From Octopus bimaculoides (lineage: Eukaryota), in NCBI RefSeq assembly GCF_001194135.2, contig NC_068986.1, positions 31,181,203 through 31,245,202 on the forward strand: DNA of 64,000 bases. The letters are read 5' to 3'. Shown in pieces: positions 435 through 2,352 of this stretch. The translations under genes were made by a program, and so were the position numbers. Within the stretch, counting starts at the first letter, position 1, and the number at the start of each line of letters is the position of its first letter. A model generated the notes under the pieces. That model searched no databases. It was not told the origin of the DNA and saw only the letters and a program-made list of their open reading frames with translations.

Positions 435-488
435 AGCATCTTTTTTAATAGTTTTAAGTTCTTCCTGCAGTACAATAAATTCTTGAAG
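435..488 (-). CDS. ASDURF: Putative exon 2 of an ASDURF-like (ASNSD1 uORF, beta-prefoldin-like) gene
   Basis: Minus strand: acceptor ctattttttcag, 54 nt phase 0/0 encoding LQEFIVLQEELKTIKKDA, donor gtaagtatg. Resembles human ASDURF [18 protein letters not shown] as I recall it. Confidence 0.55.
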
Positions 489-2286
489 CTGAAAAAATAG
501 AGAGAACAAACAACATATATTCACAGGCATACAATGAGGAATACATGCCCCAGATTCCAGAGCCATTTTAAGGCCATGGTAGAAGCTGAGGACGGCTACT
601 TTGAGTAGCCATAATCTAGTTGATATTTTTTAATTTTATTTTTGGATGAGATATTATTTTCTTTTCCTTTTATGCAAACCGTCATATTTATTTATTTGAG
701 CACCCTGTACTTTAAGTCAATGTAGATGGCAAAGAAATTCAACAAGTTTTTACTCTATTTACCATTCTGGGTATCAAGTATTTCTTTATTTTATCATAGG
801 TTTTTAACATTAGCACAGAATCACAGTCAATCGAATCTATCCAAGTATTTGGCTGATATTTATTCTGTTGATCCTGGAAGGTTAAATTGACTATGCGGGA
901 TTTGAACTCACAATGTAAATGGATATAACTAAATATTGCCAGGTATTTTATCTGGTGGTCAACTGATTTCCTCGTCCATCATCTTGAGTCCAAATCCCAC
1001 TAAAGTTTATTTTACCTTTCATCCCTCCAGCTATAAGCTGGGATCAATCCTATCTATCAATCGTCGTTCTCAGAGGTGTCTGTTTCTGTACTTGTTAGTC
1101 TCCTCAACAATTTCTTTGACAGAGGTTTGGAATAAATAAAGCCAAAAAGAAATCTACTAGTTCCAAGTTAATAGTTCAAATTGCCGTTAACATCCCGGTT
1201 TGCTCTGAACAATGGAAACCATGGGCAGGAGCAGTAACAGACCAAGGATCATTCACACTGAATCAAGGTGTAACGGAAAGCTGGTGTCTACATCGGCCAA
1301 CGAATCTGAAAATTTAATTTCTACTAATCTGAACCCTCGTAATTTAAGGAATACAAGTCACAGTCATAATCTCCAGAACTAGAATCGGACATTCTAAAAA
1401 AAAAGGTCTATGTATATCTGTCCACTCAGAATTATTTTCGATAGTTAGGTGATCGCGATCTCAGAGCAGATAATGATATTCACCTGTAGTGTACACTGTA
1501 TCAGAATTACACTACACAATTTCGTATTGTAATATAAAATAAACAATCAGGTGGCACACTATCAATATATCATAATGTTTATAACGAAGTCTACAATTTG
1601 AGAAGAAAAATTAAGTGGGTAGGTTTAATCGGAAGTTATGTACGACAGAAAACTGAGTTTATTTAAAGCCGTAATCGTGGATTAAGGCAATCTTATGGCT
1701 TTTAGCAGGATAATAGTTAATGGTATGGGCAGTCCTACAATTCCTTCTTGGGCACCAATAGCACTTTACTTTCATTTAGCTCAGAGTCACAATTTTCCCA
1801 ATGTTGGAACTGGTAATAATCTGTGAAGTTTCAGTGGTTGAATCGTAGCCAATCTGTACTGGCAAAATTTTGAACTCATTTTTTGCTTACGTTGTTTATT
1901 ATAGCATCCAAAGAAAACACGTCAAAGTGAAAATATACTTGACGGGAACCAATGCAGAGTTTATATATATAGCTTTTAACCTGACGTAAAGAGAAGTTGT
2001 TAGAGAAAGTGCACTAGCACCCTTAATTAATCTACTTATATTTTATAATTAAGCACTTGTTCATATTTCCCCGCCTATTCCAACAGGGTTAGAGTCGTTT
2101 TTTCTTCCCACTAAGACAAATAAGTGCCGAATTATTTGGTTGAGGTAAATAGGTACAACCTATTCGGAGATGGCGATTTTATTCTTTGAAGCTATCTGAC
2201 GTTTCAAACTTGAAATAAACAATTTAATAACAGATAAATCGCCAAAGCATAACATTATGTATAATAATTAGATATGTATAAATAAC

Positions 2287-2352
2287 CTTTCGTGACGCCT
2301 CCGTCTTCCTTTCAGCCAAATATTCGTCACTGAACATGAGTGCCGTCTCCAT
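2287..2352 (-). CDS. ASDURF: Putative exon 1 of the ASDURF-like gene
   Basis: aaaATGG Kozak context, METALMFSDEYLAERKTEASRK, donor AAG|gttatt in phase 0, matching exon 435-488. Lies in a locally CpG-rich region. Confidence 0.5.

Follow-up and report, generated by a model that had tools for sequence, protein, structure and literature searches.

Two small coding exons lie near position 1 of the 64,000-nucleotide stretch of the Octopus bimaculoides genome analysed here (contig NC_068986.1; hereafter the window), within window positions 435-2352. They run on the minus strand from 2352 to 2287 and from 488 to 435, are joined in phase 0 across GT/AG splice sites, and, read and translated directly from the sequence, give a spliced product of 40 amino acids. 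An earlier note on this DNA had described the same pair of exons, with their clean splice sites and matching phase, and we reproduced its coordinates and its peptide exactly. The first exon opens with an ATG (2352-2350) in the context AAAATGG and closes with the codon AAG (2289-2287), directly followed by the GT of the donor (2286-2285); the second is entered through a ttttttcAG acceptor (AG at 490-489) and left through a GTAAGT donor (434-429). We assign these exons to ASDURF and list them with their surroundings in the Table, where O. vulgaris coordinates follow the numbering of the locus OX597819.1:47,886,425-47,911,720 (L001).

Table. Features of the octopus ASDURF locus in the window and at the O. 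vulgaris locus L001
Feature	Position	Strand	Description
5' flank	2353..2400	-	In-frame TAG at 2400-2398, 16 codons before the ATG, with no other ATG between; O. vulgaris model uses the same start ATG
ASDURF coding exon 1	2287..2352	-	22 codons, translation METALMFSDEYLAERKTEASRK; followed by a phase-0 intron; residues 1-22 of A0A0L8HPQ0; O. vulgaris counterpart L001 10001-10066
Intron 1	489..2286	-	1798 nt; GT 2286-2285, AG 490-489; position and phase of quail ASDURF intron 1
ASDURF coding exon 2	435..488	-	18 codons, translation LQEFIVLQEELKTIKKDA; phase 0 at both ends; O. vulgaris counterpart L001 12114-12167
Intron 2, 5' part	1..434	-	Donor GTAAGT 434-429; exons 3 and 4 past position 1
Retroelement-like open frame	1-293	-	(...QHRLVVSDFGIKAKWEPGIRPAWRRRVWKLKDPANGQRLRDKLLEAFNEIEGDIAS); within ASDURF intron 2, continues off the window
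tRNA-Trp (anticodon CCA)	2774-2845	+	Rfam RF00005, 66.2 bits; 422 bp upstream of the ASDURF ATG, divergent
PIF1-like helicase ORF	5351-6259	-	303 aa; PF05970, 110 bits; between ASDURF and NAA35
NAA35 (Mak10) orthologue, first coding exon	6798-6866	+	23 aa, then GTAAGT; start as in the O. vulgaris NAA35 model
O. vulgaris ASDURF coding exons	L001 10001-10066, 12114-12167, 13504-13582, 15232-15296		All splice sites canonical
SINE-like repeat	L001 10673-10904		~230 bp; in O. vulgaris ASDURF intron 1, absent from window intron 1

Window positions 294-3261 are colinear with L001 9096-12320, and DNA identity between the two octopuses is ~90% across the locus. The two copies of intron 1 are likewise colinear and ~90% identical, except for a repeat of ~230 bp that is inserted in O. 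vulgaris. This SINE-like element has many copies elsewhere in the window (for example 24802-25040 and 58026-58199); its insertion site corresponds to window 1722-1728, where the alignments on its two sides overlap by 7 bp, probably because the target site was duplicated. Alignable O. vulgaris sequence ends at window position 294, so the retroelement-like frame at 1-293, which matched no Pfam family, looks like a lineage-specific insertion. O. vulgaris has conserved the tRNA-Trp gene at the corresponding site (L001 9507-9578, minus strand). NAA35 is the divergent neighbour of ASDURF, at a distance of 4.4 kb in the window and ~10 kb in O. vulgaris, and further NAA35 exons probably lie in the rest of the window; the PIF1-like frame between the two genes is probably a fragment of a Helitron-type transposon. 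The window as a whole is repeat-rich and carries transposon fragments: an open frame at 3897-4310 (plus strand), which ends at the first assembly gap, is similar to the C-terminal region of a LINE reverse transcriptase and matched no Pfam family. The window is also of draft quality: it contains 3449 N, its gaps fall at about 4.3-4.95, 35.6-35.9, 37.4-38.3, 42.1-42.9 and 43.5-44.1 kb, and long microsatellites of the CA, TC and TATG type stand beside them.

An exhaustive phmmer search of 1.84 billion representative proteins with the 40-residue product returned one match, an 87-residue protein whose residues 1-40 are 100% identical to it (E 2.5e-16). This is UniProt A0A0L8HPQ0 (A0A0L8HPQ0_OCTBM), an "Uncharacterized protein" of O. 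bimaculoides itself, and its sole cluster mate is the O. vulgaris orthologue CAI9724162.1, a "hypothetical predicted protein"; the window peptide agrees with the two at 40/40 and 36/40 residues, respectively. Both window exons, together with their splice sites and their frame, are also found in the O. vulgaris genome. A comparison of the 120 coding nucleotides between the two species shows 8 synonymous and 3 non-synonymous changes (pS 0.34, pN 0.031), which corresponds to a dN/dS of ~0.09 for exons 1-2 and rejects neutrality (binomial P 2e-4). A synonymous/non-synonymous comparison needs no gene model, and thus supports the reading frame independently of annotation.

Could the exons nevertheless be chance open reading frames, or reflect an erroneous gene model or a pseudogene in decay? 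An exact look-up of A0A0L8HPQ0 on contigs found no transcript contig on record, and the gene models come from these same genomes; gene models, cross-species conservation and homology are what place both the 2287/488 junction and the gene's 3' end. Against such a reading, the open reading frame is intact and every splice site is kept in two octopus species, the low dN/dS departs significantly from neutrality, and both the homology and the intron positions described below are common to octopus and bird, so that we regard it as extremely improbable. Because the phmmer identity, the conservation in O. vulgaris, the purifying selection and the resemblance to human ASDURF (8/27 identities) agree, these exons stand beyond chance and form part of a real gene under selection.

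The remainder of the gene lies beyond the window. Using A0A0L8HPQ0 as a tblastn query, we recovered exons 1 and 2 only; exon 3 is nowhere in the window, in keeping with the earlier note, which had placed the next exon to the left of position 1. Window 1-434 was considered as a site for exon 3 and rejected, since a matching frame is absent there and tblastn gave no match. The same note had expected that exon to read approximately KVY..Q.NS.IFF, and this stretch is present in both A0A0L8HPQ0 and the O. vulgaris protein: the off-window part of A0A0L8HPQ0 begins NFYNQQPNSNIFFKVD, where vertebrates have KVYRQQ(Q/P)NSNIFFL(A/V)D. In O. bimaculoides, exon 3 would be expected as an ag followed directly by AATTTTTAT..., coding for NFYNQQPNSNIFFKVDNKDKVSLQCQ, and exon 4, also off the window, would encode (D)SIAKLKEEMKNLEQMTPKTS and then a stop.

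The family of the protein is read most clearly from its full length. The 40-mer by itself would be weak homology evidence: it matched no Pfam family, PF21975 included, and found nothing in a word-indexed homologue search, in which the full 87-residue A0A0L8HPQ0 found only itself. The earlier note had proposed searching this peptide by HMMER and BLASTP; BLASTP aligned it to human ASDURF at a pairwise E of 0.004 in an alignment that contains the ungapped identity (8/27) which the note had cited. The note's proposal of an ASDURF homologue is borne out by the complete protein, which scores 34.7 bits against Pfam PF21975 (ASNSD1-SEP/ASDURF; curated gathering cut-off 27, E 2e-8, profile positions 21-89 of 96) and matches human ASDURF in BLASTP with an E of 4e-10, at 28% identity across 81 residues. 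The human sequence used was verified against PF21975, where it scored 213.7 bits along all 96 positions of the model. A profile built from three sequences gave 438 matches, the best 120 of which are amniote proteins (mammals, birds, reptiles) plus octopus; octopus aside, all of these best 120 are named or Pfam-tagged ASDURF, with bird proteins reaching 47% identity. Among the profile matches listed, several bird orthologues carry PF01920 in the precomputed Pfam table.

Aligning 24 sequences (octopus and 22 vertebrates, comprising mammals, birds and turtles) revealed a number of shared features: firstly, 19 columns are invariant (M1, E25, E32, L33, K37, K38, Y43, Q45, Q46, N48, S49, N50, I51, F53, D56, S62, L72, N78 and E80), of which the run from E25 to K38, the E..EL...KK pattern of helix 1, is coded inside the window; secondly, the octopus protein has the hairpin motif Y-x-Q-Q-x-N-S-N-I-[FY]-F-x-x-D; thirdly, within this motif exon 3 of the octopus protein reads FYNQQPNSNIFF, for which the vertebrate equivalent is VYRQQxNSNIFF. 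Gene structure tells the same story. In O. vulgaris ASDURF, two phase-0 introns follow codons 22 and 40 and a phase-1 intron interrupts codon 67; in quail ASDURF, the phase-0 introns follow codons 21 and 39 and the phase-1 intron interrupts codon 65. All three fall in identical alignment columns with identical phases (0, 0, 1), and exon 2 measures 54 nt in quail too. In human, the ASDURF uORF spans four exons (PMC10187264). Since sequence, motif and gene structure agree, we consider the octopus protein an orthologue of ASDURF.

An alternative to this assignment would make the protein a paralogue among the canonical beta-prefoldins (PFDN1/2/4/6), or else a coiled-coil protein of unrelated origin. 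Coiled coils readily match one another, the 40-mer alone lacks a Pfam match, and A0A0L8HPQ0 does show a weak match to Prefoldin_2. That match, however, stands at 15.6 bits, below its own cut-off of 27.6, whereas the gathering score of PF21975 is passed; moreover, the NSNIFF hairpin motif and the 19 invariant columns are held in common with vertebrate ASDURF, the intron positions are identical to those of vertebrate ASDURF, and the best 120 of the 438 profile matches are all ASDURF proteins. We therefore judge a canonical prefoldin or an unrelated coiled coil very improbable.

An AlphaFold2 model computed from the 24-sequence alignment contains a helix (residues 3-39), two strands (42-45 and 52-55) and a second helix (58-81), at moderate confidence (mean pLDDT 70.2, pTM 0.33). 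Beta-type prefoldins are defined by two helices and one beta-hairpin, the alpha class having two hairpins (bioRxiv 10.1101/2023.12.13.571423), and the topology predicted for octopus ASDURF, helix, one beta-hairpin, helix, would be that of the beta-prefoldins. Searching PDB sequences with the family profile gave archaeal prefoldin beta chains as the sole matches (1FXK_A/B), at a weak E of 0.087-0.097, and phmmer with A0A0L8HPQ0 found none among the same sequences. Foldseek comparison of the model with the PDB returned noise only (E ~10), small coiled-coil monomers being poor Foldseek queries.

Human ASDURF belongs to the prefoldin-like module of the PAQosome together with URI1, UXT, PDRG1, PFDN2 and PFDN6 (PMC10893143; PMC9406135, citing Cloutier 2020). 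The Arabidopsis orthologue At1g49245 co-purifies with UXT, URI, PFD2, PFD6 and PDRG1 (bioRxiv 10.1101/2023.12.13.571423; PMC10893143). From these human and Arabidopsis partner data, we infer the same role for octopus ASDURF: by homology, it most likely fills one of four beta-type positions in the prefoldin-like module (URI1, UXT, PDRG1, PFDN2, PFDN6, ASDURF) of the PAQosome/R2TP co-chaperone. Exons 1-2 encode most of the predicted N-terminal coiled-coil helix, which on this reading is a tentacle helix; exon 3 encodes the single predicted beta-hairpin, with its invariant Y-x-QQ-x-NSNI-x-F-xx-D motif, and exon 4 most of the C-terminal helix, both of these exons lying off the window. The hairpin would dock and pair in the central barrel of the module, and the two helices would project as a client-binding tentacle.

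The vertebrate arrangement from which ASDURF takes its name has it upstream of ASNSD1 on one mRNA, and the earlier note had suggested that an ASNSD1 coding sequence might follow on the octopus mRNA as well. Two positive controls show what this arrangement looks like: a mammalian transcript contig carries the ASDURF open reading frame at 46-381 and, after a gap of 21 nt, an asparagine-synthase frame of 642 aa (403-2331), and in quail, ASNSD1 starts 23 nt past the ASDURF stop in the same exon, with genome and transcript in agreement. In O. vulgaris, by contrast, nothing resembling ASNSD1 is found within 10 kb downstream. The ASDURF stop (TGA) is followed by an ATG-TAA, with an AATAAA 43 nt downstream, which in a genome of 35% GC is weak evidence of a signal. 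The downstream neighbour is a convergent NOG1/GTPBP4 gene 8.4 kb away, with no annotated gene between, and the upstream neighbour is NAA35, divergent from ASDURF. When we queried L001 by tblastn at E up to 10 with two ASNSD1 proteins, the human sequence (Pfam-checked) and the protein from the mammalian contig, no match was found in a search that covers 10 kb downstream; the same queries gave chance-level matches only, at best E 0.11, in the window, which represents 62 kb upstream of ASDURF. All plus-strand open stretches of 35 aa or more in the 8.4 kb downstream of O. vulgaris ASDURF were compared with Pfam, and none matched a family. The only sizeable open reading frame between ASDURF and NOG1 is a reverse-transcriptase fragment on the opposite strand (L001 15786-16670, minus; PF00078, 37 bits), ~0.5 kb past the stop. 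Because neighbours, tblastn and Pfam scan agree, we conclude that O. vulgaris lacks the arrangement seen in vertebrates; this would hold for O. bimaculoides too, judging from this sister species, its own downstream sequence lying outside the window. Linkage to ASNSD1 is a matter of how the genes are arranged and does not bear on the homology of the protein.

A bicistronic ASDURF-ASNSD1 mRNA of the vertebrate kind, with octopus ASDURF as its upstream cistron, would still have some footing: the arrangement is genuine in vertebrates, the O. bimaculoides downstream region is off the window, and a distant ASNSD1 joined through long introns is formally possible. We nonetheless hold it distinctly unlikely, as the last O. 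vulgaris ASDURF exon leads into the ATG-TAA and AATAAA with no open reading frame, the 10 kb downstream is without ASNSD1 similarity in either search, the next gene is the convergent NOG1, and the best ASNSD1 match across 62 kb upstream is at E 0.11. From the O. vulgaris genomic sequence, octopus ASDURF is most likely a stand-alone, monocistronic gene of four exons. Taken as a whole, window 435-2352 (minus strand) is very probably best explained as exons 1-2 of O. bimaculoides ASDURF, a likely beta subunit of the prefoldin-like module encoded by a stand-alone gene.

Octopus and bird share identical ASDURF intron positions and ASNSD1 is not found downstream in octopus, which together suggest that the bicistron was acquired later. 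It is fairly likely, in our estimate, that a stand-alone ASDURF as found in octopus already had the exact four-exon structure of vertebrates; if so, the vertebrate bicistron would have arisen afterwards, from an old independent gene whose last exon began to read through into ASNSD1. A literature search found no paper discussing the ASDURF/ASNSD1 arrangement in invertebrates, and the idea of a later origin for the bicistron may already be contained in the original ASDURF paper.

ASDURF is a well-studied functional microprotein encoded by a uORF, the twelfth subunit of the PAQosome and a dependency in MYC-driven medulloblastoma. Octopus ASDURF is an ordinary, already deposited orthologue of this known family. 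The earlier note had thought its exons easy to miss in annotation, which proved not to be so: gene models are public in both octopus species and PF21975 is already tabulated for the protein in the precomputed Pfam table, so that what is missing is a name and not an annotation, and the "uncharacterized" A0A0L8HPQ0, like CAI9724162.1, can now receive the name ASDURF. Being deposited and within PF21975, the orthologue adds little alone. What is mildly new is that octopus and bird have their ASDURF introns at identical positions and, at the same time, no ASNSD1 follows downstream in octopus. The first point makes the ASDURF intron positions older than the protostome-deuterostome split; the seeming independence of the octopus gene from ASNSD1 argues that the bicistron is derived, not ancestral, and, if true, would provide a datable example of the birth of a bicistronic mRNA conserved in animals. 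The homology call, which started from a coiled-coil fragment of 40 residues, was right, and the synteny prediction attached to it was not borne out.

Comparison with known systems places the octopus protein as follows. Canonical beta-prefoldins, such as archaeal 1FXK and PFDN1, the subunit that ASDURF is thought to replace, have two coiled-coil helices with one beta-hairpin between them, as is predicted for octopus; they differ in that the NSNIFF motif is missing (1FXK has SGNILI there), and octopus ASDURF falls short of the Prefoldin_2 cut-off (15.6 < 27.6), while the family profile reaches the PDB at E ~0.09. Vertebrate ASDURF, also known as ASNSD1-SEP (human UniProt L0R819; PF21975), is much closer: the octopus protein is comparable in size (87 aa; vertebrates 83-111 aa) and shares the helix-hairpin-helix layout, the Y-x-QQ-x-NSNIFF-xx-D motif and four coding exons with the same intron positions and phases, although identity is just 28-47% and the N-terminal tail is shorter in octopus. 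The two also differ downstream, where mammal and quail have the ASNSD1 coding sequence 21-23 nt away in the same exon and none follows the octopus stop (O. vulgaris). Finally, Arabidopsis At1g49245, going by its published description, resembles octopus ASDURF in being an ASDURF-type beta-prefoldin-like protein with its own gene identifier instead of a uORF; its co-purification with partners is known. That the plant ASDURF is listed as its own gene suggests that the stand-alone gene is the older state.
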